A stretch of 64,000 nucleotides of DNA, taken from positions 930,001-994,000 of the forward strand of contig NC_135771.1 in NCBI RefSeq assembly GCF_052425735.1, in the 5' to 3' direction. Positions 3,171 through 40,510 of this stretch are shown here, one piece after another (the first letter of the stretch is position 1; every line of letters starts with the position of its first letter). Both the position numbers and the translations under genes were made by a program. The notes under the pieces are model-generated. The model did not search any database and had not been told where the DNA came from. It was given only the letters and a program-made list of their open reading frames with translations. This DNA comes from Oculina patagonica (lineage: Eukaryota).

Positions 3171-4234
3171 ACTTAATTATTTAATTTTATTTATTTTATA
3201 TCTTGTTTGTGTAATTATCTGGGGCAACCGCACAAACAAGATAGTGACAATCATTTTTTTGTGATTTTCGTGGTCGGTTATAACATTTAACATTATTTCA
3301 CTGTTATTGACTCTCCGAGATCATCCGTTTACATGTAGTTAGAAAATACCATGAACGCCACATCCATGAAAGAGGAAAAGTAGAGCGGTACTACTTATTC
3401 GGGGAGTGTCACGGAGGCAATACGGAGCGGGATATCCTCTTTGAGACGTGTACCAGTGTAAATGTCAAATTTTGAAAGAAACATCTTCAAACTGATAATG
3501 GATACGGAGTGTCCGAAACATGTCTTTGAAATTTAGAAGTGTGTTTATTTTTTTTAAATGTTTAATTTCGCTCATACTTTTATGAAATTTCGCTAATATT
3601 CATTTGAAAGGTGCGATAGTCTTTAACTTTCTAAATAGTGGTCCTTCACCACTTATATATCAAACAACGTAGCTCCTAGCTTCCTAGTCAGCAAAGGAAT
3701 CAAATTGTGTACAATTTTTGCTGGACGCACACTCTTGGGACATTTGCCCAGCAAAATTAAGATAAAGATATACGAACGAACATTTCGCTCGCATTGCTTG
3801 ATTTCTCGGTGGTGTTTTTTTTTCTATACTACAAGCGTTCCAATTCTATTGACATCAGCGGTTGAAGTCTCACTGAAATAGCCGGCGTTCGATCTCATCA
3901 TACTGAAATATAAAAATTTACTGTCGCGTTTGTTCAGCCTTTAACTTTCCATTTGGATTTGAACCAACGACCAAGGCATACACAACTTCTGTAGAAGTGT
4001 TCTCTACCAACTGAGCTATCGTAACTTTGTATGGTACAGAATATTTTGTTTTGTATATTTTAACTGATATTATATTTGTACGCGCTTTAAAAAAACATGT
4101 TTAATTACTCGGTTATGAGTAAGCAAAACACTAAAAAATCGCTTTCTTTTAGTTTGTCGTACAGAGATAATTTCCACCAAATTTCTGCATTGCATGTTGC
4201 AATAATATTCAAGCGTAGCGAATGATTTAAATGT

Positions 4235-4960
4235 ATGCAATTACAGAGCAATGTATGGGCACGTTGCACAGAATTGCTTATTTCTCGACTCTTGAAAGAT
4301 CCACACCAAAAAGAAAAATGTAGGTTATTAAGAGTCATACAAAGATACTTCATACCAATTTTTAGAATGAAAGGTTTAATATTCGAGCGAGAATTGTTAT
4401 TTTAATCACAGAGATGATTTACATAATTACAGAGCAATGTATAGGTATATCACAGAATCGCAAATTTCTCAACTCTTAAAGATTGTTATCAAAAATCAAA
4501 ACGTAGGGTTATTAAGAGTCAAACAGAGATACTTCATGTCAAATTTTAGACTGAAAGATGTTATATTCAAGCCGTAGAATTATTTAATGGTACTTATTTC
4601 ATCATTAATTACAGAGCAATGTGTGGGCACGTTGCACAGAATCGCAAATTTCTCAACTCTTGAAAGATTTTTGTCAAAAATCAAAACGTAGGGTTATTAA
4701 GAGTCAAACAGAGATACTTCGTGCCAAATTTTAGACTGAAAGGTGTAATATTCAAGCCGTAGAATTATTTAATGGTACTTATTTCATTATTAATTACAGA
4801 GCAATGTATGGGCACGTTGAACAGAATTGCTAATTTCTCGGCTCTCGAAAGATTTTCATCAAAAACAAAAATGTAGGGTTATAAAGAGTCACACAGAGAT
4901 GTTTCATGCCAAATTTTAGACTAAAAGCTGTAATATTCTAGCCGTAGAATTATTTAATCG
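4235..4960. repeat. Second array of the ~181-bp repeat, about 4 units
   Basis: Same unit sequence as 2090-3170. Confidence 0.88.
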
Positions 4961-6286
4961 TACTTAATTATTTAATTATTTAATTTTATTTATTATTATA
5001 TCTTGTTTGTGTAATTAAAGTGTTTCATTCATTTATTGAAATAAAGTCACACCTGAAGCCTTCGTGCATAACCATTGGGCCACCATTGGGGCAACAGCCC
5101 ATCAAAATATCAGGTGATCAATAAAAAGTGTTTTATTGAATGTAAGTGTCAATATATGACCATGTGATCTAAAAACTTGAGAGCAATTGCCACGTTAATA
5201 TTGATATTGATAAGTATATTGATATTGATATCGATCGTTGTCAAATAAAAAAGTTCTTACTTGCGTTTCAGCAACCGTGCAATCTTTTGGCAGAAGCTTT
5301 TATGTTTATGAGCTAAATAAATTGGAGGCATGTTTAACGAAACGGCTTTTAATACATGACGTTTAAACGTTTGCGTGAATGTAGTATAACCATTAGATAA
5401 GACGTAGATAAAAACAAATGGGAAATTATTAGTAATTTTAAGTTTTTTTTAAATTATGTATTAATCAGATACGACACACAAAGACGTTTATATAAAATGC
5501 AATCGAATCACAATCTTAATTCTTACTTGCCCCCAGTCGTCTTTAATTTTGTGAGCAAATTATAAGATGCCGACCCCTACTTCTTAAAATTTTCTTCCAG
5601 GCACGATTGGTTATCCGAACAAGTCATCTGATTAGCAATTAACGCTTAGAAAGTTGGTTGATAATTAAGTAAATAATATCAGAAACATTAAGGACATCAG
5701 ACTTCGTGCTCCGAAGAACGTGTCACAGCTATCAAATGTGGCGGTTATATTGATGGCTTCGACGGAAATCAAATTTAAGACAAACAGGTCACAATAAGAA
5801 GCAATATATTTTGTTTTATAATCGACACTCTACGATCACCGTAGGAAATGAAACTCATAAAAATTTGAAAAAATATATTTTTTGTAGGTAAATAAAAAGG
5901 AGGTCAATATGTCTAAAAGTAAAAAACTTTTGATGCGTGCATGAGTGACTAAAAACAAGCGTGATTTTCATAATAAAATCCACAACCTTGGTGGGGAATG
6001 TATAATAAATGACATGAATTATAAATTTATATCAATAATTCAACCGATGTTTTACGTGGGTAAATAATAAACGCTTTATTGGAGACTTTCTAAAGAGCAA
6101 TACCTGATGGGATATATTGTAAACAACTGAAAATAACTTGATGGCATAATTATTTAGAAAAGGCAACAGGCGCAAACAAGCAGATTCACCTGTGCACCAT
6201 TGATCTAGCGGTTTGATGCAGAGCCGCCAGCCTTTTTTTACTCTGGAAAGACAACGTGTAAAGGAGCTTTTTTTGAATGCACTAAA

Positions 6287-9200
6287 ATGAGTGTAGGTCT
6301 CAGAGTTGTATTTGGTGTGATAGGATCACTTGCCATCATCAACAACTCCCTTTTGCTGGTAGTTATTATCCAGAACAGGTCTATGCTGAAGACGCCATAC
6401 AACACATTGGTGTTAAGCTTGGCCATCACTGACTTAATTTCAGGTTGGTAAAAGGGTTTGCTTTCATCTCTGTCTGAACAAACAACATCCGCAAGATATT
6501 AGCGGTTCTGTAAAAGTTGTGTTGATCGGCGAGCTGCTACAGTTTTCAGATACTTTTTACAATTAGAAAGGAGGAGATTCAATGATAACACTTTTATATT
6601 AGCTTTAAATGCATAAGTTTCTTGGAGAGAGTCAGGTTTAATAACAGCCTCCCAATTTTATAAAAAAAACCTAGCGACATATACAGGGCTTTTGACAACA
6701 GTATTAGAAAAGAAAAGTAAAAGTTTGTCTACGTTTGTGATCAAAACAATTTTTTATTTCTCTCAAAACCCTTCTTTTTCACGCTTTATATTTAAAGTAC
6801 GTACTTCGTTTATCTTTTAAAAAACCTTTATTTAATACGCTCATATCAAAGTCCTGAGTTGCTACTTCAACTCTTACCGAAATTTCTTTTCGATTCCAAA
6901 ATCCCATCAATTATTAACGACTGGTGGAGTATCATCGGCTATTCTGTTCTTTTCTTCCATACTTTTGAGCAGAGAAGGGTGCGTATTTCCGATTCTGAAT
7001 TTAAAAATTAAAGAAGAAATAGAATGGAAACTAAAGAAAAACGCTGAATAATAACTATTTATCTTTAATTTTTGTCTGTTGATTTTATCGTATTGGAGAG
7101 TGAAGGTATAGCAGACAGTTAAGATTGACATTTGCCAAATGGCAAACATGTCAGAATGCAAAGGGCATGTTTCAGGATTCGGAATGGAACTGTGTAACTG
7201 TTTTACGCGTATGATAAATGACCGTCTCTTACAACATAATTTACAAATTAATTGCTTAACCCGAAATTCTCACCGTGGATTTTTATTTTTCATTCCGCAA
7301 GTCATGGAAAAAAACACTCCTTGTTTTTAGATTTGAAACGCACGTCTTCCTAACTGGCAGACTGCTTTTGAATTTTTTTTGCGTTAGTTTCGCTAAATCA
7401 CTTTGTAAGGCATCCAAATTTGAGAGAAACGAAGCAATCCTTCATTTAATTGGAATAGCATTTCTTGCTCTAGGTGATAAATTTTCCATCTAAATGCGGC
7501 TTTCTTTAACACCTCGAGATAAATTTGTTTGCTTATACTCGGTGAATTCGATGGGCGGGTCCGTCCAGTGGGAAACATTCCAAGTACCAGCGGTGCACTC
7601 TTTACATAAGCCACAGGATATTATTATGTTCACCCATGCAACCTTTCTCAATGGCTCAAGTTCTAATGGCAAAACTTGCTTTAGGCAATATTGAACATGT
7701 TAAGCAAACTTGTCAATTTTTTAACAGAAAGCTTTTTTTAACTCATTATTTTATGATACAGCATGGATTAAAAATTAAGCTTAAGAACATCTTGCCCTTT
7801 ACTGGCCTTTTTTTTTAAAAAAAAAGAAGTGAAACATTTTAAATTTCTATTTTACACTTCGCGGGACTACTTTGGCACGGCTCTGTTAAAATTAAATACT
7901 TAAATTGTATGGTTATCAGTTATAGGTAAAATTGTTATTAGAACGTTTTTTATCTAAGCCGAACTATCGCAGCGATGAACCTCGAAAGGTTTATTTTTTT
8001 TCTTCCCTTAATGTAAGAAAATTTACTCCTTCACAGATGTGTACATATAACTTTTAAACAACAAACAGGTCTTGGTGATATGTAACTTACGTTATAACGA
8101 CGTTAAGTATTTTTTAGTTTGTTTCAGTTTAATATAACAACGTTAAGTATTTTTTAGTTCGTTTCAGTTTAATCAAGGTTTCTTTTTTAAAACAGGCAAC
8201 ATATCATCTGATATACGCGCTGACAAAAACGTTTTTAAAGCTATTTAGCAACACCGTGGGTGTGCCAAGTATATGATATAAATGTTTAATTAATCTGTTA
8301 AGTGCACTTGAGACATAAAAATTACGCAAAATTTAATTTCTCCAGCTTTGCCGCCGCCACGATCTCAAAGGTTTTTTATATTTCCATAGATACGCTATTA
8401 TTTGGAGTTTTAAGATATCAACATGGCGGGGGTGACATAATATAGGGGAATTCGAAAGTTTCTATTCGTGATTGCCTCAGGCTTCGTTTACGAAAAGCGC
8501 ACGTCCATTTGCAAAGTCATGATAATCGCCACGTTAACAACGTCTTATGTGAAACAAATACCGCACAATTCCGGTTATAAGCCTTGGGCTTATACAACTT
8601 CATAAGGGTTTTGGGATGGACTAATAATTGGAGCAGGTTATACCCGGGAGGGCTTATAAACGAAACGAGCCACGGGAGTGTTGATCGGTTTTAAGTTAAA
8701 AACGAAAAGCAACATTTAGCCTTGTTCAGTACTGTCATCCGGCAGAGGGGGCTTATATCCGGGGGGGCCTTATAATCGGATGAATTTTTTGTTTCCAAGT
8801 AGATGGGCCTATAACTGGGGGGAGGGGGCTTATAACCGGAATTTTACGGTATACGATGGTAGCGCGCCGTTATATGACCAAGCTATTATGAAAAACAATT
8901 GATAACAATATAGTAGTGAAACTTATTTTAATATTTTTCACATATATTTTTTAATATGTATTCTTTTCAATTTAAAGGAATTGGTATTTTAGTTACCCCT
9001 GTGTACGTAATTGGGTCTGACTCAGTCACAGTTCCGCCCGGAGGTTTTGGCCAGTTTTTCTGCCGAATGATTTTTTCTCAGTACCTCGTGTTTACGCTGG
9101 GTATCGTGTCAGTGTACACAGTCACATGCATGGCAATGGACAGATGGCTCGCTGTAGCTCGCCCGACCAATTACAAAACAATTTTAACGAAGCCGCGAGT

Positions 9201-9825
9201 TAACATTTGTGTGCTGTGCATCTGGGTGCTGTCGGTTCTTTTGAACACTCCACACCTGTTTGAAATGAAAGCTACAACTGGCCCAGACAACAAAGCGCAG
9301 TGTGAGTGGGTTGTTCTCACCCAAGGAACAACAAGAAGAGTTGTGGCTATTTTGGAATTTTGTGGAAAGTTTTTCCTTCCCCTTCTCACGACTACCGTTA
9401 CTATGGTAAGTCTCAACAATCACGTCAAGTCGTCACCAGCCCTCTTTCAAACGAATAGAGGCAAGGCAGGGCTGCGTTTACTGCGCATGTGCATGTTAAC
9501 AGCGATCGTGCTTGGAGTGTGTTGGTTTCCTAACCAATTGTATTATATGTTGTTTAAGTATGACATCACTCAACTGGACACGCCCATGCACCATTTCACT
9601 GGGGTGCTATGCATGTTCAACTCGTGCGTCAATCCTTTGATTTACTGCATCAGTAACAAGACATACCGAAGGCAGTTTTCACTTGTCTTGTGTCCATGGT
9701 ACAGGGTAAGGGTTATGGCGAAGGAGCAGACTGGAAGTGATCCTGGAAGCGTGGCAAACGAGCTAAGAATCTCTAAGGTGAATGGACCAGCTACAATAAG
9801 CGTTACAAACATCACAAATGCTTAA
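6287..9825 (+). CDS. Rhodopsin-like (class A) GPCR 1, orphan peptide-receptor-like, 334 aa; exons 6287-6443, 8978-9825
   Basis: TM1-2 exon MSVGLRVVFG...LAITDLISG|gttggt joined in phase 1 to aag|GAATT; FCR, MDRW, CWFP and NSCVNPLIY motifs. Confidence 0.9.
8561..8849. mobile_element. MITE with TA target duplication (CCGTA-type termini, Tc1/mariner-pogo class)
   Basis: TIR CCGCACAATTCCGGTTATAAGCC / GGCTTATAACCGGAATTTTACGG flanked by TA; absent from copy 2. Confidence 0.85.
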
Positions 9826-10642
9826 GTTATCGACATCGATGGACAACAAGACATGACTTTCCAAGAAACAAACATGTTTATTTTGAAAGTAGTGAGAAAC
9901 TTTAACTAGCATTTTGTTTGTCAAGTGAGTGGTATATTGAATAGGAGTTCATCAATGTCTGTGACAGTTTTTTTTTTTCCGGTACGCAATGGTTTTTTCT
10001 TTACATGACAAAATGGGAAGGTATGAAAACGCTGATACATTGTTATGGTAGACGCTATTAAAAGTTCCAGTCCGAAACTTACAATTTTATGTATTTATAA
10101 GAGAAACGCTCGTTCGATCGTGTTCTATCAACGAACACAAAGCAATGGAAGAACCGTTGAGATTCGCGAGTTTCCAGTAGATAACTCTAATGTTATCATG
10201 GTTATACTAGTTAGAATTCGAAATATTTATGCTAGTAAAAAATAAAACATTTTATCTCTAATTTCTCCCCGAAAGCTTTATACATAATAAATGAAATGAA
10301 TAAAACTTTCAACTTAGCTGAGAAACCAGTCATGATACACGATTAAATTCTCCCAAGCAGTACCAAGAGACATTATTGAGATCTAAAAGGAGAATGTGTT
10401 AATTGATCTCATTGTTTTAAAGGTTCACATACTGAGTTATCCTTCGGGTCATTCACTGAGTTATTTATAGCTTTGGGCGTAGTCGAATGTTTGCAGAAAC
10501 CGACACAATCGATTATTGTAAATATAATGTTCTGTATGAAGTATGTTTAGGATGGAACTGTATGTGGAGTGCACGTTTTTTCACCAATATTATTTTATAA
10601 ATATCAGTGTCAAAGCATTAGTTGTATTTACTGTAAAATCAG

Positions 10643-11043
10643 GTATGTGTTGCTGTGGAGGGTATGGTTTTCAAGCAGTTTAGGTTGAATAGGGTATAGA
10701 AATCAGCGAATTTTGGTCTAGAAAAGGGTATCATTTGCCGGAAAACTGATCAGTAGTACGAGGAATTAAGTCCAGAATAGAAATAGAAACTCGGAAGAGG
10801 AAAAGGGCCTTTTTAAACGTAAATCAAATCATCGTGTCAACGTTGTTGACAGATGGTTTTTCATTGAAAACACAAATAGTGATACAGTTCTGAAAACGGC
10901 AAGTCTGGGATAGGGTGGCGATTTTCGATGTTTTGTCCAGTAAAGGGTTGCGAAATCAGCTGAACAGGGTCTAGTATAGGGTAAGGGTTTCAGAGTTTCC
11001 CAGTGGCACACCCCCACCCAGAAATATATAGAGTACCCCCGGG
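10643..11043. mobile_element. Non-autonomous TE fragment ending ...GAGTACCCCCGGG (also ~19949-20349)
   Basis: GC-rich terminus, flanked on both sides by AAAATCAG. Present in both duplicate copies, so it predates the duplication. Confidence 0.5.
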
Positions 11044-11280
11044 AAAATCAGCGGTTCATTATAGAGAAAACATCAAGCTTCTCCTTGAATATGCATGAAA
11101 ACACAGTGATTACAGATAAACTATTATTCTTAAGCTGTATATTCTGACAAAATAAAATAAACTAATACGCAGATCACTGTAGTCTTTATTTGATCTTAAA
11201 TTTAGATCAGTTGCAAACGTATTTTAATTTCACAAGCTGGTATGACTTCTCTCACTAAGCTGAGTCAGTGTTGATTATTA

Positions 11281-11612
11281 ATGTTCTGCCAGATTCTGTT
11301 TTATGGCAGTGGTTGTCCTGTTCGTTCAAACTCTCTCTGATTATCTATGTTTATCTATGATTATTGATTATCTGATTTATTTATGTTTATCTATGATTAT
11401 TGATTATCTGATTTATTTATGTTTATCTATGATTATTGATTATCTGATTTATTTATGTTCTGCCAGATTCTGTTTTATGGCAGTGGTTGTCCTGTTCGTT
11501 CAAACTCTCTCTGATTATCTATGTTTATCTATGATTATTGATTATCTGATTTATTTATGTTCTGCTAGATTTTGTTTTATGGCAGTGGTTGTCCTGTTTG
11601 TTTAAACTCTCT
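11281..11612. repeat. Compound minisatellite in the 3' end of the small secreted gene (copy 1)
   Basis: ~60-bp block ATGTTCTGCCAGATTC...CAAACTCTCT x3, interleaved with ~39-bp TTATCTATGATTATTGATTATC units. Confidence 0.85.
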
Positions 11613-13163
11613 TTTTAGTTCCTCCCATTGCTCGGCAGTCATCATTATGTCATCTTCAAATGCGTCAAGACCATTTTCTACAAGAAATTTTATTATTTAA
11701 AGCCGGAATTTAAAATTAGAAGATTAACTAGCTCTGTGCTCACATTCATTGAAATTAGTATTTTGCCCTTCCTAAACTACATTGTTTTCCTAATTTTCAA
11801 GAAGTAATCGAGTAAAAAATTCGAACAGAAGGTACAGAAATATTTCCTAGTATTTGCTTATCGGATCTAGATAGCAAAGAACAAAAATAATATATAGGTA
11901 ATATCCTCTATATTCCACCCTATTGTCAACTCCCTCCGTTTATTTTTGCATGAGAACTCATAACTAACCCTAACTAAGCCCTTCTATGGATCATTGCTCG
12001 TCACAAGTATACTTAGCAATTGATGTTATAAAGAAATTAATGCTATAATAAAGCGTTCCTGAAATATAGTCAGATCCTGTATTTTGGGAAATATCTCGTA
12101 TGTTAGGCCTAGAGGTAGATTGCATCAACTGAGGTCCTAGTAACCTTTCACTTTTTAAGGAAAATGCCTGACAAGGAAGACTTTATGTGTGTAATGGCTC
12201 CCCAAGTTGTTGTTGTTGTTTTTTTCAGCTAGTTAACCTTTGGGCGATTAACTACTTTATATACTTACTCTGGTTAACTTCAACTTCATCGAGTTCCTCA
12301 TCCTCTTGTGGGTCTCCTTCTGTTAGAGGAACGCCTTCCTCGTGTTGATCATCTTGTGAGGAGGAAATCACATCAATTGCCCGTCAGCACTTTAACTCTA
12401 ATTTTTTTTCGTTCTTTGTTTATGTAAGATATTGTAAATTACTTGAATAAAGAAAACTGAAAACTGTAGTGTGAACAGTACACAAAGAAAATATTTAGAA
12501 GAAAAATGTTTAGCTATTGAGGAGAAATATATGAATATATATATTTCATGCTATATACCTTCGGAAGTTTGGGAGGTAAAAGAAATATTGAGAGTAATCA
12601 CGATGTTAATGACTTAACATCAATCTAGCTATCTAGACAGTAGGCTGAATTGAATGTGGAGGTGAAAAAGAATTTTTTTAGAAAAATTTCAAAATTTCCT
12701 AAAAGAAACGTATTTAGTATATTTGGTTAATGTTCAGTGCAGTGCATTGTGTTTTTTTTTTTTGTGTATCTGACATTGAGCTAGCTGGTTGACTGACGCA
12801 AAATGGACACAACACGAAAGCTTTTAGATATAAAGAACCCAAGCCTTTGGTAGATATTATTTTCGAGTACTGAACGAGTAAGGCTTTCTTTTTATTTATT
12901 TCGAGGTCATTTTGTGATTGAACGTGCTTTGAAGTGAATAAATTTTCATCTGAAACTTTATAGCTAAGCTAACTTCGGAGACATTAATTTTTTTGAACAA
13001 ACAAAAATTTTGTCTACCAGTCATCATGTATATTTATTATTTTTAGTTGAAAAGACTCATTTATAAACTATCACTATACCTTTATCAGGCGGATTGTTTT
13101 CTATAAGGCAGTGGTCACTTGAGGAAGCCAGATCAAAAGTATCAGAATGGGAATAACGTTCAT
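11577..13163 (-). pseudogene. Frameshifted duplicate of the astacin-propeptide-like gene; exons 13163-13080, 12352-12269, 11677-11577
   Basis: Exon 1 is 84 nt versus 82 in copy 2: an extra TA gives TTA TAG right after the signal peptide. Motif reads FEDDI instead of FEGDI. Splice sites are retained. Confidence 0.7.
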
Positions 13164-13431
13164 GTTTCTGTAGAGCTGTTTCAAACGGATAAATTCATAA
13201 ATTTTAAATAACACGTTTGAATGAGGACATGGCGGGTGCACCGATTGAATCAGCTGTATTTTCTGAATATGTGTTTTGAGCATTAAACCAATCAGATTTG
13301 GTGTAGTAAAGAAAATTTAAATAGTAATAATGGGTTTTACGCAGCATGTTTACTTAACAAGATCATGGACCATGGCTACACGTTTTTCACAAACACGAAA
13401 AGATCAGTATTGAAATAACAATAAATGTTCA

Positions 13432-14366
13432 TGTAAATAATAAAGATGGTAGATTTTAAGCTCGGTGATAAATAGTGAAGAATATTATTCTACATGACAC
13501 GAGCGTGGGACAAAGAAAAAATCTGAGTCCCCGACGGGAATCGAACCCATGGCCTCCCAGATACCGGTTGGGCGCTCTAACCAACTGAGCTACGTGAGAC
13601 TCGCTGTGAGCTGGGCCATTTACTAGGTTGATATGTGACACGCGTCCTGCATACTGCTAGGATCAGCAATGTCGAAATCATCAAATTTGTTGTAAATAAT
13701 AAAGATGGTAGATTTTAAGCTCGGTGATAAATAGTGAAGAATATTATTTCACATGACACGAGCATGGGACAAAGAAAAAATCTGAGTCCCCGACGGGAAT
13801 CGAACCCATGGCCTCCCAGATACCGGTTGGGCGCTCTAACCAACTGAGCTACGTGAGACTCGCTGTGAGCTGGGCCATTTACTAGGTTGATATGTGACAC
13901 GCGTCCTGCATACTGCTAGGATCAGCAATGTCGAAATCATCAAATTTGTTGTAAATAATAAAGATGGTAGATTTTAAGCTCGGTGATAAATAGTGAAGAA
14001 TATTATTCCACATGACACGAGCATGGGACAAAGACAAAATCTGAGTCCCCGACGGGAATCGAACCCATGGCCTCCCAGATACCGGTTGGGCGCTCTAACC
14101 AACTGAGCTACGTGAGACTCGCTGTGAGCTGGGCCATTTACTAGGTTGATATGTGACACGCGTCCTGCATACTGCTAGGATCAGCAATGTCGAAATCATC
14201 AAATTTGTTGTAAATAATAAAGATGGTAGATTTTAAGCTCGGTGATAAATAGTGAAGAATATTATTGTACATGACACGAGCGTGGGACAAAGACAAAATC
14301 TGAGTCCCCGACGGGAATCGAACCCATGGCCTCCCAGATACCGGTTGGGCGCTCTAACCAACTGAG
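13432..14366 (-). repeat. Tandem array of ~3.6 x 259-bp tRNA-derived (SINE-like) units
   Basis: Near-identical units with period 259. Each has a minus-strand tRNA-like core (13525-13602) with A box TAGCTCAGTTGG and B box GGTTCGATTCC. Confidence 0.9.
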
Positions 14367-14615
14367 TGTCAATATATAACCATGTGATCTAAAAACTTGA
14401 GAGCAATTGCCACATTGATATTGATGTTGAAAATTTTATTGATATTGATATCGATCGTTGTCAAATAAAAAAGTTCTTACTTGCGTTTCAGCAACCGTGC
14501 AATCTTTTGGCAGAAGCTTTTATGTTTATGAGCTAAATAAATTGGAGGCATTTTTAACGAAACGGCTTTTAATACATGACGTTTAAACGTTTGCGTGAAT
14601 GTAGTATAACCATTA

Positions 14616-14855
14616 AGCGGCCTTCACACGACAAACTATTGGCCAACTCGTGTTGGCAAACTCGAGTTGGTGTGTGTGAACGACGCAGCAACGGCAAACA
14701 CGTTGGCAAACTGTTGGCGACAAAACAGAACTTGTCTCTATTCTGACCATCAGTTTGCCAACTTTTTTGCCGACTGTTGTTGTGTCGTTCACATACACCA
14801 ACTTGAGTTTGCCAACATGAGTTTGCCAATTTTAGTTTGTCGTGTGAAGGCCGCT
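14616..14855. mobile_element. MITE, PIF/Harbinger-like (TTA target duplication)
   Basis: TIR AGCGGCCTTCACACGACAAACT / AGTTTGTCGTGTGAAGGCCGCT; the empty site CATTAGATAA is visible in copy 1 (~5391). Confidence 0.9.
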
Positions 14856-15748
14856 TTAGATAAGACGTAGATAAAAACAAATGGAAAATTATTAATTTTA
14901 ATTTTAAGTTTTTTTAATTATGTATTAATCAGATACGACACGCAACGACGTTTATATAAAATGCAATCGACTCACAATCTTAATTCTTACTTGCCCCCAG
15001 TCGTCTTTAATTTTGTGAGCAAATTGTAAGATGCGGACCCCTACTTCTTAAAATTTTCTTCCAAGGGACGATTGGTTATCCGAACAAGTCATCTGACTAG
15101 CAATTAACGCTCAGAAAGTAGGTAAATAGTTAAGTAAATACTATCAGAAACATCACGAACATCAGACTTCGTGCTCCGAAGAACGTGTCACAGCTATCAA
15201 ATGTGGCGGCTTTATTGATGGCTTCGACGGAAATCAAATTTAAGACAAACAGGTCACAATAAGAAGCAATATATTTTGTTTTATAATTGACACTCTACGA
15301 TCACCGTAGGAAATGAAACTCATAAAAATTTGAAAAAATATATTTTTTGTAGGTAAATAAAAAGGAGGTAAATATGCCTAAAAGGAGAAAACTTTTGATG
15401 CGTGCAGGAGTAATCCATTAAAACAAGTGACTGATTTTCACAGTAAAATCCACAACAATGGCGGGCAATGTATAATAGATGACATGAACTATAAATTTAT
15501 ATCAATAATTCAACTGATGTTTTACGTGGGTAAATAATAAACGCTTTATCGGAGACTTTCTAAAGAGCAATACCTGATGGGATATATTGTAAACAACTGA
15601 AAATAACATTGGCAACAGGCGCAAACAAGCAGAATCACCTGTGCACCATTACCCTAGCGGTTTGATGCAGAGCCACCAGGCTTGGGAAAAATCCCATTTT
15701 TTACTCTGGAAAGACAACGTGTAAAGGAGCTTTTTTGAATGCACTAAA

Positions 15749-18700
15749 ATGACTGTTGGTCTCAGAGTTGTATTTGGTGTGATAGGATCACTTGCCATCA
15801 TCAACAACACCCTTTTGCTGGTAGTTATTATCCAGAACAGGTCTATGCTGAAGACGCCATACAACACATTGGTGTTAAGCTTGGCCATCACTGACTTAAT
15901 TTCAGGTTGGTGCAAGGGTTTGCTTTCATCTCTGTATGAACAAACAACATCCGTAAGACATTAGCGGTTCTGTAAAAGTTGTGCTGATCTGATCAGCAAA
16001 CTGCTCAGGTTTTTAGATACGTTTTACAATAAGAAACGAGGAGATGCAATGCGACTCCATGTTTGATCACAGTTTTAGCTATAAATGCATAGTTTCTAGA
16101 AGAGCGTCCCAATTTTATAAAAAAACGAGCGACAAATACAAGGCTTTTGACAGCAGTATTAGAAAAGAAAAGTAAATGTTTGTTTACATTTGTGATCAAA
16201 ACAATTTTTTATTTCTCTAAAAACCCTTCTTTTTCAAGCTTTTTATTTAAGATCGTACTTCGTTTATCTTTTAAAGAAACCTTTATTTAATACGCTCATA
16301 TCAAAGTTCTGAGTTGCTACTTCAACTCTTACCGAAATTTCTTTTCGATTCCTAAATCGCATCAATTATTAACGACTGGTGGAGTATCATCGGCTATTCT
16401 GTTCTTTTTTTCCATACTTTTGAGCAGAGAAGGGTGCGTATTTCCGATTCTGAATTTATAAAAATGAAAGAAGAAATAGAATGGAAACTAAAGAAAGAAA
16501 AAAACCCAAGCACAAAAAACACTGAATAATAACTATTTACCTTTAATTTTTGTCTGTTGATTTTATCGTATTGGAGAGTGAAGGTAGAGCAGACAGTTAA
16601 GATTGACATTTGCCAAATGGCAAACATATCAGAATGCAAAGTGCATGTCTTATTCGGAACGGACGCGTTTGATAGGCAATGTTGAACATGTTAAGCAAAC
16701 TTGTCAATTTTTTTAACAGAAAGCTTTTTTCAACTCATTATTTTATGTGAAAATATTGAAGGACCGCAGCCAGGATACAACATATTATAAAATTTAAAAC
16801 GATCTCTGGCTTAAAAACTTTAAAAATGCAAGCTTTCGGCTGTTTGAACTACAGCCTTCGACGGGTAAAATGTAAAAAGGTAAAAATATGCAATGTGTGA
16901 AGCTGCGAAATAAAAATGCTAATAACTAAGAATATTTGTGAAAAAGAATGTTGTACTGTCCAGGTAGAGGACAGGAATTGTTATCCGCATTGGGAGTTAG
17001 CTTCGAATGCCACGCTTCCAATAAAACGCTTCCTTGTTCCTTCCTTGTTCACGCTTCCTTGTTCTTTATGGTACAGCATGGATTTAAAATTAAGCCAAAG
17101 AACACCTTGTCCTTAACTGTTTCTTTTTTCTCTTCTTTAAAACTGAAAACTTTTAAATGTCTATTTTACACTCCGCGGGACTATTTTCGCACGTTTCGTC
17201 TTTAGCGATTCAGTGGAATTCAGCGGAACTTCAAAATGTGTTTTCGATGTGTGGTGTTGTTAGAAAAGCTTTCTTTCGATAAGATATTTGAAGCAGTAAC
17301 ACAAAAGCTTGCAATCAGGTGTAAATAGTTTTGGTACATAATTTTGTCCAATAACTACTCGAAGTCCTGGCGGATTTCCTCTTAAAGCTATTTAGCAACA
17401 CTGTGGGTGTGCCAAGTACATGATATAAATGTTTTATTAATCTGTTAAGTTCACGTGAGACATAAAAATTACGCAAAATTTAATTCCTCCAGCTTTGCAG
17501 ATGCCACGATCTCCAAGGATTTTTATATTTCCATAAATACGCTATTATTTGAAGTTTTAAGATATAGAACATGGCGCGTGACATAATTGAGGGGAATTCG
17601 AAAGTTTCTATTCGTGATTGCCTCTGGCCTCGTTAACTAAAAGCGCACGTCCGTTTTCAACGTCATGATAATCGCCACGTTAACAACGTCTGATGTAAAT
17701 CGAATACCTTAAGGTTACTATTGTTAGCGGCTACTAATTTTAGCGATTTTAGCGAATTGGGCCAAAATCGCTTAATTAAGTACTCGCTAAAATTTGTCTC
17801 GGTCAAATTTAATACACGTTAATTTAATACCCCCTCACGCCAGAGGAACACAAAATTAAATACAGTGGCCCCTTTCAACTATATGACAACGTTTGAAGTT
17901 AGGGCAACAATTACGAAGGGTTGGGAGAAAGCTGGGATCGCCGGCATCGTGGAAAATATGTCCGATTTCTCTGACGAGGACGACTTTCTAACATTTGCAA
18001 TTCACTTTGTTTTTTCCGACAATGGTAATGTTTGTTCAATTTTAAGTGACTTTGTTCTATTACTGAACATTTATTTCCATCTTAGCTATATATTAAAATT
18101 GTTTTTTTTTTCAGTTTTCGGAAAATCGCTTAATTTAATAGTCGCTAAAAATAATAACCTTAAGGTATACGGTGGTAGCGCGCCGTTATATGACCAAGCT
18201 ATTATAAAAACAATTGATAAAAATATAGTAGTGAAACTTCTTTTTAATAATTTTTAAATCTATGTTCTTTTTAATTCAAAGGAATTGGTATTTTAATCAC
18301 CCCTGTGTACGTAATTGGGCCTGACTCAGTCACAGTTCCACCCGGAGATTTTGGTCAGTTTTTCTGCCGAATGATTTTTTCTCAGTACCTCGTGTTTACG
18401 CTGGGTATCGTGTCAGTGTACACAGTCACATGCATGGCAATGGACAGATGGCTCGCTGTAGCTCGCCCGACCAAGTACAAAACAACTTTAACGAAGCCGC
18501 GAGTTAACATTTGTGTGCTGTGCATCTGGGTGCTTTCGATTCTTTTGAACACTCCGCACCTGTTTGAAATGAAAGCTACAACTGGCCCAGATAACAAAGC
18601 GCAGTGTGAGTGGGTTGTTCTCACCCAGGGAACAACAAGAAGAGTTGTTGCTATTTTGGAATTTTGTGGAAAGTTTTTCCTTCCCCTTCTCACGACTACG

Positions 18701-19129
18701 GTTACCATGGTGAGTCTCAACAATCACGTCAAGTCGTCACCAGCCCTCTTTCAAACGAATAGAGGCAAGGCAGGGCTGCGTTTACTGCGCATGTGCATGT
18801 TAACAGCGATCGTGCTTGGAGTGTGTTGGTTTCCTAACCAATTGTATTATATGTTGTTTAAGTATGACATCACTCAACTGGACACGCCCATGCACCATTT
18901 CACTGTGGTGCTGTGCATGTTTAACTCGTGCGTCAATCCTTTGATTTACTGCATCAGTAACAAGACATACCGAAGGCACTTTTCACTTGTCTTGTGTCCA
19001 TGGTACAGGGTAAGGATTGTGGCAATGGAGCAGACTGGAAGTGATCCTGGAAGCGTGGCAAACGAACTAAGAATCTCTAAGGTGAATGGACCGGCTGCAA
19101 AAAGCGTTACAAATATCACAAATGCTTAA
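15749..19129 (+). CDS. Rhodopsin-like GPCR 2, recent duplicate of GPCR 1, 334 aa; exons 15749-15905, 18282-19129
   Basis: Same structure and motifs as GPCR 1; roughly 95% amino-acid identity by eye. Confidence 0.9.
16748..17064. mobile_element. 317-bp insertion with a 6-bp target duplication (TTTATG); possible Penelope-like retroelement remnant
   Basis: Absent from copy 1 (~7750). Ends in tandem CTTCCTTGTTC repeats and carries a degenerate hammerhead-like motif on the minus strand. Confidence 0.55.
17707..18165. mobile_element. MITE or internally deleted pogo-like element, TA target duplication
   Basis: TIR CCTTAAGGTTA / TAACCTTAAGG flanked by TA. Internal ITKGWEKAGI resembles a pogo/Tigger transposase C-terminus. 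Sister copy at 61597-62018. Confidence 0.8.
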
Positions 19130-20589
19130 GTTATCGACATCGATGGACAACAAGACATGACTTTCCAAGAAACAAAAATGGTTATTTTGAAAGTAGTGAG
19201 AAACTTTAACTAGCATTTTGTTTGTCAAGTGAGTGGTATATTGAATAGGAGTTCATCAATGTCTGTGACAGTTTTCTTTTTTTTTTCCTGTACGCAATGG
19301 CTTTTTCTTTACATGACAAAATGGGAAGGTATGAAAACGCTGATACATTGTTATGGTAGACGCTATTAAAAGTTCCAGTCCAAAACTTACAATTTTTATG
19401 TATTTATAAGAGAAACGCTCGTTCGATCGTGTTCTATCAACGAACACAAAGCAATGGAAGAACCGTTGAGATTCGCGAGTTTCCAGTAGATAACTCTAAT
19501 GTTATCATGGTTATACTATTTAGAATTCGAAATATTTATGCTAGTAAGAAATAAAACATTTTATCTCTAATTTCTCTCCGAAAGCTTTATACATAATAAA
19601 TGAAATGAAAAAAAATTTTAACTTAGCTGAGAAACCAGTCATGATACACGATTAAATTCTCCCAAGCAGTACCAAGAGACATTATTGAGATCTAAAAGGA
19701 GAATTTGTTAATTGATGTCATTGTTTAAAAGGTTCACATACTGAGTTATCCTTCGGGTCATTCACTGAGTTATTTATAGCTTTGGGCGTAGTCGAATGTT
19801 TGCAGAAACCGACAAAATCGATTATTGTAAATAAAATGTTCTGTATGAAGTATGTTTAGGATGGAACTGTATGTGGAGTGCACGTGTTTTCACCAATATT
19901 ATTTTATAAATATCAGTGTCAAAACAGTTGTATTTACTGTAAAATCAGGTATGTGCCGCTGTGGAGGGTATGGTTTTCAAGCAGTTTAGGTTGGGATAGG
20001 GTATAGAAATCAGCGAATTTTGGTCTAGAAAAGGGTATCATTTGCCGGAAAACTGATCAGTAGTATGAGGAATTAAGTCCAGAATAGAAATAGAAACTCG
20101 GAAGAGAAAAAGGCCTTTTTAAACGTAAATAAAATCATCGTGGCAACGTTGTTGACAGATGGTTTTTCATTGAAAACACAAATATTGATACAGTTCTGAA
20201 AACGGCAAGTCTGGGATAGAGTAGCGATTTTCGGGGTTTTGTCCAGTAAAGGGTTGCGAAATCAGCTGAACAGGGTCTAGTATAGGGTAAGGGTTTCAGA
20301 GTTTCCCAGTGGCACACCCCCACCCAGAAATATATAGAGTACCCCCGGGAAAATCAGCGGTTCATTATAGAGAAAACATCAAGCTTCTCCTTGAATATGC
20401 ATGAAAACACAGTGATTACAGATAAACTATTATTCCTAAGCTATATATTCTGACAAAATAAAATAAACTATAACGCAGATCATTGTAGTCTTTATTTGAT
20501 GTAGAATTTAGATCAGTTGCAAACGTATTCAAATATTTCACAAGTTGGTATGACGTCTCTGACTAAGCTGAGTCAGTATTGATTATTAA

Positions 20590-20780
20590 TGTTCTGCCAG
20601 ATTCTGTTTTATGGCAGTGGTTGTCCTGTTCGTTCAAACTCTCTCTGATCATCTATGTTTATCTATGATTATTGATTATCTGATTATCTATGTTTATCTA
20701 TGATTGTTGATTATCTGATTATCTATGTTCTGCCAGATTCTGTTTTATGGCAGTGGTTGTCCTGTTCGTTTAAACTCTCT
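20590..20780. repeat. Compound minisatellite in the 3' end of the small secreted gene (copy 2)
   Basis: Same units as 11281-11612, fewer copies. Confidence 0.8.
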
Positions 20781-22705
20781 CTTTAGTTCCTCCCATTGCT
20801 CCGCAGTCATCATTATGTCACCTTCAAATGCGTCAAGACCATTTCCTACAATAAATTTTATTATTTAAAGGGAATTATTAGAAGATTATGTAGCGCTAAG
20901 TTCACATCCCTTGAAATTATTTCGCCCTCCCTTATAAAATACATTGTTATTCTCTTTTTGTTTTCGAGTAAAGAATTCGAACAAAAGGTATAGGAATCAT
21001 TTTCTAGTATTTGCTTATTGGATCTAGATCTCAAAGTACAAAAAGATCATTTAGGTAATATCCTTTATATTCCACCCTATCGTCAACTCCTTTCGTTTAC
21101 TGATTTTGCGTGATGTCTTATAACTTAAAGCTAAGCCATGCTATGGATTATTGCTTGTCACGAGTATACTGTGCAACTGATGTTATAAAGAAAACTTATG
21201 CTATAAGAAAGTGTTCCTAAAATATAGTCAGATCCTGTATTTTAGAAAACCTCTCGTATGTTAGGACCTAAGGGTAGATTGCATCAATTGAGGTCCGTTG
21301 TAACCTTTCACTTTTTTTCAGGTTAATGCCTGACAAGGGAGGCTTCAAGCAACAATATCTAAGTTGTCCCTTTATAAGGGTTAATGGCACCTAAAGTTGT
21401 TGCTTTTTTTAGCTAGTTCACGAATCAGGGGCACCCAACAGACCGTTTCGGTGAATATTTCAGTGTTCGAAAGACCAATAATCGCCTACGATTTTTGTAT
21501 TAAAGTGTGATGAAAAACTGAAGATTTCTTTAGCTCAAACTTTCGTGACATGGGCAAAGTAACGCCTGTTGTTTTCGGAGATAGAAAAATGTCGTTTTGG
21601 GTACAAAAAACGGTCAGCTACGATTTTCGAGAAGGTAACAATGGCGCGTAAATTCGGTTAATTATATTTCGTTCCCTAAATTTTTTGAAGTTTGAAGGTT
21701 AAGCTAGCGTATCCGAAAGGTTACGCTTTTCTTAGAATTTGAAAAGAAGTCTTTAAACTGCACAAATAGGACAAGTAAAAACGGTATTCCGACACCTATA
21801 GTAAAAATGTCTCGTTGGGTGTCCCTGACAAATTGGAGATTAAGAACTTTACTTACTCTGGTTAACTTTAACTTCATCGAGCTCCTCATCCTCTTGTAGG
21901 TCTCCTTCTGTTAGAGGAAGGCCTTCCTCGTGTTGATCATCTTGTGAAGAAGGAAATCACATCAATTGCCTGTCAGCACTTTAACTCTAATTCTATTTCG
22001 TTCTTTGTTTGTGTAAGATATTCTGAATTACTTGAATAGCGAAAACTGCACTGTAAACAGTTCCCAAGCTCCAGAAGAAAGTATTTAGCTATCGAGGAGA
22101 AAAAATAAAAATATTTATTCCACGCTTTGGGAAGTTTGGGAAGCAAAAGAAATAGTAATCACAATGTTGATGACCTAGCATCAGTCTAGCTATCTAGTCA
22201 GTAGGCAGAATTAAGGGTGGAGGTGAAAAAGAATAATCTTAGAAAACATTTCAAATTTCTAAAAGGAGCGTATTAAGTATGTTTGATTAATATTCAGTGC
22301 AATGCATTTATCTGACATTGAGCTAGCTGGTTGGCTGACGAGAAATGGACACATAACGAAAGCTTTAAGATATAAAAAACCCAAGCGTTCGGTAGATATT
22401 ATTTTAAAGCACTAAATGTGTAAGGCATTCTTTTTATTTATTCCGAGGTCATTTCGTCATTGAACGTGCTTTGAAGTGAATAAATTTTCATCTGAAACTT
22501 TATAGCTAAGCTAACGTCGGAGACATTTAATTTTTTTGAACAAACATAAATTTTGTCTACCCGTCATCATGCATATTTATTGTTTTTAGTTGATATGACT
22601 CATTTACGGAATTATCACTATACCTTTATCGGGGGGATTGTCTTCTAAGGCAGTGGTCAGTTGAGGAAGCCAGATCAAAAGTAGCAGAATTGGAATAACG
22701 TTCAT
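20745..22705 (-). CDS. Small secreted astacin-propeptide-like protein, 88 aa, no catalytic domain; exons 22705-22624, 21940-21857, 20845-20745
   Basis: GT-AG phase-1 introns give MNVIPILLLLIWLPQLTTALEDNPPDK-D-DQHEEGLPLTEGDLQEDEELDEVKVNQ-R-NGLDAFEGDIMMTAEQWEELKREFKRTGQPLP*. Signal peptide plus FEGDI motif; AATAAA on the minus strand at 20491-20496. Confidence 0.78.
21426..21827. mobile_element. MITE with CAGGG termini (hAT-like termini) in intron 2 of the small gene
   Basis: TIR CAGGGGCACCCAAC / GTTGGGTGTCCCTG; absent from copy 1; target duplication unclear. Confidence 0.7.
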
Positions 22706-23645
22706 GTTTCTGTTAAGATGTTTCCAGAGGATAAGTTCATAAATTTTGAATAACACGTTCGAATGAGGACATTGCGGGTGCACCGATTGAATCAGCTGTT
22801 TTTTTCTGGATACTGTGTTTTGAGCATTAAACCAATCAGTTTTGGAGTCAGTTAAAACAATTTAAATAATAATAATGGGTTTCACCCAGCGTGTTTACTT
22901 AACAAGACCATGAACCATGGCTACACGTTTTGCACAAACACGAAAAGATCAGTAATAAAATAACAATAATTGTTTATGGTGTTCCTAGTACAATGAAATA
23001 ATCTTATACCAGTAATTTCCATTGGGAAAACCATATTGAATGAATATTCTCAGCATTGATCATGTATCTGAGTTTGCTGGGAACGTGTTTTTTGTTTCTT
23101 AGTTTTTCCCCAAGCCATCTGTGTTTGCGTTCTTCTGATCCACAAATTGCGTGTCGTGGGCTTGAAAGTAGCAGGTTTGGAATAACGTTCATGTTTCTGT
23201 AGAGCTTTTTTCATCCAATAATTGCCTTAATTTTAGATACACTTTAGAATGAGGACTTGCCCGGCGCGCCGATTGAGTCAGCTGTATTTTCTAGATTTGT
23301 TTTTCAAGCATTAAGCCAATCAGATTTGGTCTAGTTAAAACAATTTAAATAATAATAATGGTTTAACGCAGCGTGTTTACTTAACAAGATCATGGACCAT
23401 AGCTACGCGTTTTGCACAAACACGAAAAGAGAGGTAATAAAATAACAATTATTGTTTATGTTGTTTCCAATACAACGACGTCAAATATTATACTGGTAAT
23501 TCGTATTGGGAAAACTTTATTCTCAGTATAGATCATGTATCTGGGTTGATTGGGAACCTGTTTTTCATTTTTTTTAGTCTTTCCCCAACCCATCTGTGTT
23601 TGTGTTCTTGTGATAAACAAAGTGCATACCGTGGGCTTGAAAGAT
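22680..23645. repeat. Local tandem duplication of the promoter and start of the small minus-strand gene
   Basis: 22680-22990 recurs at ~23166-23460, including ATGAACGTTATTCC and a CCAATC box; ~22990-23170 recurs at ~23470-23645. Confidence 0.8.
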
Positions 23646-27578: not shown

Positions 27579-30500
27579 TTATATACGAATTTCTGAGGCA
27601 CTACGTGAATGATACCCGTCGTTCCTTGAGATATTTGTCATCCGAGGGATAGTATGCGCATGAACCGGTACCATGGTACTGCTGCTCATCCTGTGAGCCC
27701 GCTTATCTTCAGATGTAGCAGATGGGGCCTCTGGTATACTATACCCTGACTTCCAAGGACAAATAAATCCAACAAAATACTTCCTGTAAAATGGATTGGT
27801 TACACAATAAATGAATGGGTTTAAGGTGGAATTTCCCATGCACATCACCACAGTCACTTGATGCGCCGCTGTGTCCATCTGAGTGATGTCAAACTTGAAC
27901 AACAGGTAATAAACTTGATTAGGAAACCAACAAATCGCCAGAACCACTGCAATGATTGCACACATGCGCAAAAGACGTACACCGGCTTTGCCTTTATTTG
28001 TTTGAAAGAGTGCTGGTGAATCTTTTACTTTCACCCAGAGGCTCAGAAAAGACAAACATGTGATAATAAGTGGTATCAAAAACTTTCCAAGAAACTCAAC
28101 CAAAGCAACTGCTTTTCTGATATTGCCTTCGGTGAGGGACACCCACACGCAATGGTTATCAGGCGCCAGTTTCATCTCAAAAAGGTGAGGAGCGTTAAAT
28201 AAAAAAGACACGAGCCATACCGCTAGCACCATGACATATATTCTGTAACTTTTGAAACCTGCTCTGTACTGCGCAGGTTTAGCGACTGCAAACCATCGCT
28301 CAAGAGATAAACACGTGATTGTATAGACTGAAACAATGCCAAGTGTAAACACAAGATAGTATGACACTACTATTCGGCAAAACAGCTCTCCTGCTAGGCC
28401 TCCTGGGATTGGAAAGTTCTTTGTTCCTATGATATATGCTGGTGTCAGAATTAGGCCAATACCTATGAAAATAAAAACAAATGATATGTTAGATTCTATT
28501 TAAGATAAATATTGGATTAATTCTTGTTATCTTTGTATCGAAATGCGATTTCAGGAATTACTGCTATGTATCAATGTTTAGCACATCTGATAAAAACTGC
28601 AATGATATGGATGTTAACGTTGAGTGTTTTGCCGGATGCTGTCTTACAAAAATAGCCAAAAAGATGAAATAGTGTTAGTATAGGATTTTGTGCGTAGAGT
28701 TTATCCCTTTTAAAAGAGCAATGCCACGGTATTTCAAGTCCGCATTTTTCTGATCAGTTTCGAATTAAAGGAAACCTCATAATAACAGTTTTCAAACGTA
28801 AAAATACCAAAGGGGTAATAAAACCCCAAGAATAAACAAGGATAGTTTCGACTGCCAAAGAGTGAGACAGATTGCGAATGACAAACTTGAAAAAATTTGG
28901 CAATTTTTTCAAGTTAGTTGTCCGTGACCTAGCTCCTTTAAGAAAAGCAAGAAATTAGGGAAGCGAGTAGAATACGTGAGACAACAAGCATGCAAGGTTA
29001 AAAATATGGAGGAAATGGCAGCATTATAAAAACACGAAATTCATAAAACTTGTATTGCCCAACTTTTTGTCTGATTGGTCTTTCTTAGCTGCCAGAGTCT
29101 CTCAGTATTAATAAGTCAGTCATCGTAGTTTTATCAAAACAGCACTCAGGGCAGATCGACCGACTGATGATATATCATTTCCTGAATATCCAATATAATG
29201 GACTCAAACCTTAGGTTATTATAATTTCTTAATCTAATTGATCTTGGGGACTATTTTGCTTGACGTCACACAAAAGATTAAAAAAAAATAGACAAAAACC
29301 TCAAATAAATCGTACATATCAATTTAAAAAAAAATAAAAAGCTAGCATTAGTTTTACTCAAAAGTGCTAATTTGAATGTCCTCACATCAACAAACTTGTA
29401 AGTTACAACCACATAATTGACTCGAAGTTTGTCTGTGGGGGGTGATGGAGTCAAAGAGCCAAAATATGTGTGTGAAAAAAAAAATGAAATCAGAAAAACA
29501 AATAGGAACGCATTAACATCAACCCAACTGGGCCAACCTTGTTATTGCGTACCAAGGTAAACATTGGCACAGCCAAACAGGATCGTGCTATTAGACCTAT
29601 TATCTTTGGGCTCATTTCGCTATTTATTTCGTTGAAGATCTGCTTTTACGCGGCTTGCTTTAATCAAATGAAAGTGAAAAATTTAAATATTGGCAGTAAT
29701 AATTTCGTGCAAGCAACTAAAGATGATTGATTTTAGTGTATTGTTTTTATTCCCGCCTAAAGATCTTATCAAAACACTCTCACACAATGATTGCGAGCCA
29801 AGCAAACGCTTCAACGGGTCTTGGTGGCGCTAATTTGTAGCTTTCAATATTCATTCATTGTGTTTATTCGGAAATTGAAGTACCAGTAATAGTTAAAGGT
29901 TGAGATCACAACCAAACATACACAGGACGAGACAAGGCATAAAATAAAACTTGTCTTGTTGAACGCCACATGTATCTTGTATCTTAAGGCAAATAAGACG
30001 TTAATTTCTACGACATGTCGGGCCAACCTTATAATAAGCCAAACTGATAACGAAAATAAATAATAGAATAAATTAACTCGTGTCAAAGTTTTCTTCAAGA
30101 TAGTACTAAACTTTTTTAATTTAACGGAACTGTGTCACGGATTTTAGCCAAATTTAGGCATGGGAAATCAAATTCGGTGAAATATAAAAAATAACCTCTT
30201 AAAACAGTGAAGGAGCATTTTAATAACACAGCAAATACAAAAGTAGGTACGGATGGGCAAAAGTGACGAAGATTGAAACAAATTGCAATATTCGGTTTCT
30301 GAAATATTTTTGGGCGTAATAGTTTTCAAAGTTAATCTCTTCAAAAAGTAAGTTTCATAGCGGGTATTTGGCAAAACACAATAAAACTCAGGCGTGGGAC
30401 AGGTTACCTGTTGTCATGTCAGTCACAGCCAGGCTTAAGATCAACACATTGTATGAGCTTCGTAAGAGAGATCGATTGCGGAGCAGCACCAAGATTAAAA

Positions 30501-40226: not shown

Positions 40227-40357
40227 TTACCGTAAGCTTCGCCTAAAGGACGACAAGATAATTTTATCCCCCTCCCCTAAAATAAATAAATAAATACTTT
40301 ACATTTTACTGCTTCTCGAAATACGGATTAAAACTTAACTAAATTCAGAATAAATCA

Positions 40358-40510
40358 ACCTAGTAAATGGACCAGCTGACCACGAGTCTCTCGAAGCGCA
40401 GTTGGTTAGGGCAACCGATATCTTGAAGGCCATGGGTTCGATTCCCTTCGGGGACTCAGAATTTTTCTTTGTCCCATGTTCGTGTTATTGTTGAAAAATA
40501 CATCTTTACT
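40358..40510 (+). mobile_element. Solo diverged copy of the 259-bp tRNA-derived unit
   Basis: CCTAGTAAATGG..GAGTCTC..GGTTCGATTCCC..GGGGACTCAGA..CTTTGTCCCA is the reverse complement of the 13432-14366 unit. Confidence 0.8.

Follow-up and report, generated by a model that had tools for sequence, protein, structure and literature searches.

A conserved stony-coral family of short secreted proteins carrying an astacin-type prosegment motif, putative trans inhibitors of astacins

A small gene on the minus strand of a 64,000-nucleotide (nt) stretch of the Oculina patagonica genome (contig NC_135771.1, positions 930,001 to 994,000 of the forward strand) was analyzed as a candidate gene for a stand-alone astacin propeptide. 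The whole stretch is called the window, and all coordinates refer to it. The gene is designated copy A and its tandem duplicate copy B. Copy A consists of three exons (22705-22624, 21940-21857, and 20845-20745) separated by GT-AG introns of phase 1/1, and its coding sequence of 267 nt encodes a product of 88 amino acids (aa). The original prediction, made from the sequence alone, had given the same three-exon model, which we reproduced exactly. Exon 1 (22624-22705) starts with the ATG at 22705, encodes the putative signal peptide and the first mature residues, and ends with the phase-1 donor G/GTATAG. Exon 2 (21857-21940, 84 nt) lies between the acceptor ...cacaag and the donor A/GTAAGT, with phase-1 introns on either side, and encodes the acidic stretch ending in VNQ. 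The coding part of exon 3 (20745-20845) follows the acceptor ...ttattgtag and ends with the TAA at 20747-20745. It encodes a conserved 32-aa block that contains the FEGDI motif, a predicted helix, and the TGQPLP tail. Overall, the product comprises a hydrophobic N-terminus, an acidic stretch, NGLDAFEGDIMMTAEQWEELKREFKR, and then the TGQPLP tail followed by the stop codon. FEGDI corresponds to residues 62-66, and the stop lies six codons past KREFKR, the latter as predicted. The 3′ untranslated region (UTR) can be aligned to the orthologous RNA contigs L001, L015, and L018 down to about position 20465, and a candidate AATAAA polyadenylation signal (20491-20496, minus strand) lies within this conserved stretch.

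The gene had been described as hidden. This holds only for the prokaryote-style list of open reading frames (ORFs) that accompanied the sequence, since a protein identical to the copy A product residue for residue is annotated as P0028, "hypothetical protein ACROYT_G042757 [Oculina patagonica]". The gene model is thus already in GenBank with no function assigned, and the model itself is not new.

All full-length members of the copy A family have a hydrophobic N-terminal stretch typical of a signal peptide. In the AlphaFold2 (AF2) prediction of the copy A product, a helix spans residues 4-12, within the putative signal peptide, and the Porites evermanni orthologue is named 'Secreted protein' in UniProt. 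As predicted, no catalytic exon was found nearby: HExxHxxGxxH was absent from all six frames of the window, and tblastn with the catalytic exons of the astacin gene L010 (see below) gave no match in it. Similarly, the Pfam search returned no match of the family to the astacin catalytic domain (PF01400; HExxHxxGxxH and the SxMHY Met-turn). Splicing onward from exon 3 was considered and rejected, because the sequence from the KREFKR codons to the stop contains no GT and the orthologous mRNAs run collinear with the genomic sequence in this region. The absence of a catalytic domain, together with orthologous mRNAs that end after an ORF of 78-94 aa, indicates that the copy A product is not an astacin peptidase. 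The aspartate-switch motif FXGDI, as defined for astacins (PMC9848320), is present in the form FEGDI. The motif alone proves nothing, because the pattern F.GD[ILMV] matched once in about 128,000 six-frame positions of the window, no more than the 1-2 matches expected by chance according to a rough estimate. Its weight comes from its context and conservation.

Homologues were collected by searching 1.84 billion representative proteins with the 32-aa exon 3 sequence (phmmer), followed by searches with a profile of the family. The phmmer search retrieved nine short proteins with the same end point, and the profile searches added more. Named orthologues are the 89-aa proteins of Porites lobata, P. 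evermanni, and P. harrisoni, and a partial protein of Pocillopora meandrina; further full-length members of 78-94 aa (P0012, P0025, P0026, P0027, and P0032) came from RNA-seq assemblies. Annotated and transcribed orthologues were found in at least four coral genera. All members, from Oculina, Porites, Pocillopora, and further corals, end at TGQP(L/V/M)P plus 0-2 residues, so that the position of the stop shifts by two codons at most among intact members. Two long repeat proteins among the phmmer matches (P0002 and P0010) were discarded as artefacts of multiple weak repeat matches, and two bacterial proteins listed as cluster members (P0014 and P0015) were discarded as spurious. In another coral genome, P0009 (L019-L021) has HEFEGDI in place of DAFEGDI and has lost the usual stop, which lengthens it by 13 residues; this member could represent a diverging paralogue or a pseudogene.

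Transcription was assessed on Logan contigs. The contigs L001/L002, L003-L007, L012-L014, and L015-L018 contain the whole ORF with the introns removed. When aligned to the window, these spliced contigs of orthologues fall into three blocks that break exactly at the three exon boundaries of copy A, in agreement with the predicted model; for exon 1, the boundary agrees with L001, L015, and L018. Past the stop codon, the orthologous RNA contigs extend into 3′ UTR sequence collinear with the genome, and no catalytic-domain exon was found after the stop. Thus, the onward splicing to a catalytic exon that would speak against a propeptide-only gene was not seen in these contigs.

The ratio of nonsynonymous to synonymous substitution rates (dN/dS) was calculated by the Nei-Gojobori method for six coding sequences. 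For the C-terminal 32 codons, dN/dS was 0.05-0.16; in comparisons of Oculina, Porites, and Pocillopora, the synonymous sites had reached or nearly reached saturation. The N-terminal part, i.e., the signal peptide and the acidic spacer, gave values of 0.2-0.76. In the alignments, FEGDI does not vary across the family at F, E, D, and I, and hardly varies at the Gly. Full or nearly full invariance also applies to N-G-x-D-A before the motif, to M-T-x-E-Q behind it, and to the T, Q, and final P of the tail. The copy A family is therefore conserved under purifying selection across stony corals, and the expectation of orthologues with the same early stop and dN/dS below 1 was borne out, the orthologues being 78-94 aa long. 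In contrast, KREFKR did not hold up as a cleavage site. As a conserved furin-type activation site it was rejected on the alignment, in which relatives have EQ, ER, QR, or KE at the position of the dibasic KR that precedes TGQPLP; this lack of conservation makes KR unlikely as an activation-type cleavage site. The TGQP-x-P tail is itself conserved and presumably contributes to binding.

Next, the similarity of the family to genuine astacin pre-pro regions beyond the motif was examined. Outside the family, the family profile matched best to P0055 and P0056, both of them astacin-type N-termini. P0056 forms exon 1 of the gene L010, whose next exons encode ...TCVRFV...HEL and ...SIMHY. The exon following P0056 matched crayfish astacin with 6.6e-12, which confirms that P0056 belongs to an astacin gene. 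P0055 runs into a typical mature N-terminus, WPNNVLPYVID; independent confirmation of P0055 as an astacin was not obtained, and a search with its residues 1-70 returned only P0055 itself. L010 (JGI metagenome 3300050194) and L011 (ENA ERZ508587) are uncharacterised astacin-type genes on metagenome assemblies, with prosegments that are the closest we found to the coral family.

In BLASTP, P0028 shared 14 of 18 residues with P0055 (DAFEGDI..TAEQ.E.LK; E 5e-7) and 11 of 19 with P0056 (E 0.003). Alignment of the family with the N-termini of P0055 and P0056 by hhalign gave a probability of 96.1% and an E value of 2.9e-9 over 45 columns, which take in the acidic spacer, FEGDI, and the following helix. 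In an anchored flank test, FEGDI was fixed as the anchor and the flanks were shuffled. The downstream flank similarity had p of about 1e-4 for P0055 and about 0.007 for P0056. The same test with the human meprin β propeptide gave p of about 0.002 upstream and about 5e-4 overall. This sequence was taken from Table 1 of PMC13680589 and was not picked by any similarity search. Meprin β and the coral family have (I/V)N...GLD.FEGDI in common. Judged by eye, the number of residues from the FEGDI Asp to the mature N-terminus of P0055 is approximately the same as that from the Asp to the stop in the coral family. These results support the proposal of a secreted propeptide-only gene homologous to astacin pre-pro regions, and on the sequence comparisons the coral family probably descends from such a region.

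In the solved astacin zymogens, the prosegment is largely unstructured and crosses the active-site cleft in the direction opposite to that of the substrate, and the Asp of its motif replaces the zinc-bound water (PMC9848320). A free synthetic propeptide of meprin β inhibits meprin β in trans, with a half-maximal inhibitory concentration of 1.35 µM, or 0.68 µM after C-terminal trimming (PMC13680589). It spares meprin α, BMP-1, ADAMs, and MMPs, and partly affects ovastacin (PMC13680589). This trans inhibition lends plausibility to the role of astacin inhibitor or chaperone that the original prediction had proposed. Copy A is best read as a functional gene of a stony-coral family of secreted proteins of 78-94 aa, built from a signal peptide, a variable acidic spacer, and a strongly conserved 32-residue block; this block is a probable homologue of the astacin (M12A) prosegment, with the FEGDI aspartate switch and no catalytic domain. 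By analogy with the zymogens, the mature, mostly disordered peptide would, after secretion, enter the active-site cleft of its cognate astacin or astacins in reverse orientation, where the FEGDI aspartate would displace the zinc-bound water, and the helix after FEGDI and the TGQPLP tail would provide specificity contacts. The protein would thus serve as a competitive trans inhibitor, or a buffer, of extracellular astacin activity. In the AF2 model, calculated with the family alignment, the chain is disordered, a single helix (residues 70-83; predicted local distance difference test score of about 89) is predicted with confidence, and FEGDI lies in coil. It is compatible with a zymogen-like binding mode, yet it does not discriminate. 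As a whole, the view of this conserved secreted propeptide-only protein as a subfamily-specific trans inhibitor or buffer of coral astacins appears to be the best explanation, and we give it about an even chance of being right.

Self-comparison of the window revealed a tandem segmental duplication of ~9.2 kb (5145-13433 versus 14365-22978), with 81-96% nt identity distributed unevenly along its length. The duplicated unit comprises a G-protein-coupled receptor (GPCR) gene on the plus strand and the small propeptide gene on the minus strand. The exons of copy B, all on the minus strand, lie at 13080-13163, 12269-12352, and 11577-11677. A 2-nt insertion in exon 1 brings a TAG into frame after codon 20, with loss of the signal peptide, and the GenBank model of copy B, P0031 (ACROYT_G042755), lacks a signal peptide. 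Exon 3 of copy B encodes FEDDI instead of FEGDI and KQ instead of KR, with the same TGQPLP stop. The only family sequence that breaks the motif Gly is therefore the frameshifted one. In contrast to the frameshifted small gene, exon 2 of the GPCR is intact in both copies (96% aa identity). When A and B were compared within the window, the conservation of the exons did not clearly stand out from that of some intronic and flanking stretches. This comparison is uninformative about exon constraint, and cross-species dN/dS was therefore used. About 450 nt of intron 2 of copy A (21400-21850) have no counterpart in copy B; either A gained this stretch by insertion, possibly of a mobile element, or B lost it by deletion.

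Several smaller repeats were noted around the two copies. The exon-3 end is tandemly duplicated over 136 nt (20580-20782; 11272-11612 in copy B), with a GATAATCA-type microsatellite between the copies. In copy A, a 67-nt duplicate of the exon-3 end lies in the 3′ UTR (20580-20646, minus strand), separated from the original by the microsatellite. This duplication is absent from the orthologous transcripts L001, L015, and L018, and therefore arose in the Oculina lineage, before the A/B duplication. A degenerate tandem duplicate of the promoter and exon-1 region (23165-23643, minus strand; about 80% identity) has an ORF that decays after MNVIPNLLL. Directly upstream of copy B, a 259-bp satellite is present in about 3.6 copies with 98-99% identity (13432-14366), and a related piece of 160 nt lies on the other strand at 40354-40510. 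Two further tandem arrays with a unit of ~183 bp occupy 2094-3188 and 4156-4980, with 76-91% identity between the copies.

The convergent neighbor of copy A is a rhodopsin-class orphan GPCR gene on the plus strand (15749-19129), with exon 1 at about 15749-15964 and the exon 2 ORF at 18305-19129. Its end at 19129 agrees with the predicted distance of 1.6 kb downstream of copy A. At each of the genomic loci examined, namely copies A and B, L008, and, from further ENA assemblies, L019-L023, exon 3 is followed 1.4-2.2 kb downstream by a convergent GPCR of the 7tm_1 type, and the small gene is also paired with a GPCR in the RNA contigs L001, L003-L007, and L012. The neighboring receptors are orthologous, with 87%, 73%, 72%, and 64% aa identity to the window GPCR, and fall into cnidarian orphan clusters. 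RNA contigs from three lineages link the two genes through their 3′ ends, both spliced and on opposite strands. The joined contigs probably reflect a tail-to-tail overlap of the transcripts, or else merging by unstranded assembly. A further rhodopsin-class GPCR exon, paralogous to the receptor exon at 18305-19129, was found at 27579-28367 on the minus strand, and the window is thus a small GPCR cluster.

Several points weigh against the astacin-inhibitor reading. The family found no astacin match in Pfam, in phmmer and profile (hmmsearch) searches of the PDB, or in the ESM protein atlas. However, the genuine astacin N-terminus P0056, used as a control, likewise missed the PDB zymogens and the Pfam Astacin model, so these negative database results are weak and say little. 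The crayfish prosegment, checked against 3LQ0, showed no flank similarity outside the motif (p of about 0.55), which indicates that the resemblance is specific to some astacin subfamilies. Because P0055 and P0056 were retrieved by a word search seeded from the family, their similarity is partly selected. Moreover, the pre-pro region is intronless in L010 and L011 but is split by two introns in the coral family, and exon-level descent is therefore not shown. The evidence for transcription and splicing comes from contigs of relatives, and we infer astacin binding and inhibition by the copy A product from the zymogen structures and the meprin β precedent. Some of these points would suit a conserved small acidic secreted protein unrelated to astacins (e.g., a matrix or calcium-binding protein), in which FEGDI and its flanks arose by chance or convergence. 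No database model recognizes the family, nothing beyond the motif is shared with the crayfish prosegment, and FxGDI alone is expected roughly once per window by chance (a rough estimate). In addition, very many windows were scanned, which brings in a look-elsewhere effect, and profile scores can be inflated by acidic composition. Nevertheless, the most conserved residues of the family are exactly those of the motif, and the flank similarity is above chance and in a fixed register for three astacin pro-regions, of which meprin β was not chosen by a search. The hhalign probability of 96% and the order of signal peptide, acidic spacer, FEGDI, and LT-x-EQ, which is the same as in P0056, also argue against a chance resemblance, and we consider an unrelated protein unlikely.

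The conserved adjacency to the GPCR, retained at every genomic locus examined, is another point on the opposing side, as it would fit a secreted signaling peptide or pro-hormone, maybe recruited from a protease prosegment, with the 32-residue block as a possible ligand of the adjacent orphan receptor. RNA contigs of three lineages join the small gene and the GPCR, both were duplicated together as the 9.2-kb unit, all spliced members have a basic residue (R/K) ahead of the conserved block, and the receptor comes from cnidarian-specific orphan clusters. Adjacency over 2 kb, however, would be expected by default in slowly rearranging coral genomes, and overlapping 3′ UTRs would constrain it even if the genes had no functional link. 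The hallmarks of cnidarian neuropeptides (repeated copies, a conserved dibasic site, and a C-terminal Gly for amidation) are missing, as there is a single block with monobasic R/K only. A GPCR ligand would also leave unexplained why the invariant core is exactly the astacin FEGDI with astacin-like flanks, and it seems to us quite improbable. The narrower proposal that a freed astacin prosegment was recruited as a signaling peptide, its 32-residue block acting as a ligand or a protease-gated modulator of the tail-to-tail GPCR, is very unlikely; on this view, the two genes, with overlapping 3′ UTRs, would have been passed on as a single unit and duplicated as such in Oculina. Finally, copy A could be a decaying remnant, i.e., what is left of the 5′ part of an astacin gene after loss of the catalytic exons, drifting neutrally. 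In its favor, copy B is broken, with its 2-nt insertion, the stop in exon 1, and FEGDI changed to FEDDI, and in the A/B comparison the exons do not clearly exceed some intronic or flanking stretches in conservation. Against this, Oculina, Pocillopora, Porites, and others all retain this short ORF with the same C-terminus, dN/dS stays at 0.05-0.16 with synonymous sites saturated, and spliced transcripts exist in several species. The conserved ends and the purifying selection contradict a neutral truncation for copy A; this reading, which retains hardly any probability, is refuted for copy A and the family.

For the astacins, which include meprins, BMP1/tolloids, hatching enzymes, and many cnidarian patterning, matrix, and venom enzymes, the main means of control are zymogen activation and a few unrelated inhibitors. 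The statement in the original prediction that no free-standing astacin propeptide inhibitor is known agrees with our full-text literature searches for astacin propeptide inhibitors and for the motif, which found no natural example of a free-standing astacin or metzincin prosegment. The family, its conservation, and its homology to astacin prosegments appear undescribed so far. If the astacin-inhibitor reading is correct, the coral protein would be the first natural propeptide-type inhibitor reported for astacins, and for any metzincin as far as the literature searches show. It would then parallel, in nature, the synthetic meprin β propeptide published as an inhibitor in 2026, offer a short specificity scaffold shaped by natural evolution for the design of selective astacin inhibitors, and hint at a new level of control over extracellular proteases in reef-building corals.

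Among known systems, the astacin M12A zymogens (pro-meprin β, L010/P0056, and L011/P0055) have the same order of signal peptide, acidic stretch, and FEGDI. The matches to the coral protein extend to GLD-x-FEGDI in meprin β and to DAFEGDI-xx-TAEQ-x-E-x-LK in P0055. The coral chain is predicted to be largely disordered, like astacin prosegments, and its length after the motif is similar to that of the P0055 prosegment. Unlike the zymogens, the coral ORF stops after the conserved TGQPLP tail, with no catalytic domain, and its pre-pro region is split by two phase-1 introns that are absent from this region of L010 and L011.

Stand-alone propeptide-like inhibitors are established for other protease classes: CTLA-2, crammer, and BCPI (MEROPS I29) act on papain-like cysteine proteases, and I9 inhibitors act on subtilases. 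The propeptide-like protein of Plasmodium SUB1 is one subtilase example (PMC6993865). As in these systems, the coral gene is independent, codes for a propeptide homologue only, has a secreted product, and is maintained by selection. In contrast, the I29 and I9 inhibitors are folded prodomains directed against cysteine or serine proteases, whereas the putative target of the coral protein is a zinc metzincin, which a short, mostly unstructured peptide would block through metal coordination. Fetuin-B and PCPE-2 are endogenous astacin inhibitors with unrelated folds (PMC10696041). Fetuin-B, sizzled/sFRPs, and PCPE-2 are secreted proteins that restrain astacin-family proteases, as is proposed for the coral protein, but they have cystatin-like, Frizzled/NTR, and CUB/NTR folds, respectively, and none of them derives from the prosegment of the protease itself. 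The synthetic meprin β propeptide (Armbrust et al. 2026, PMC13680589) is a free FEGDI prosegment of about 35-40 residues and a competitive, micromolar, subfamily-specific inhibitor. It shares with the coral protein the form of a free astacin prosegment with FEGDI; however, it is man-made, whereas the coral protein is genetically encoded and has a longer C-terminal helix and tail.

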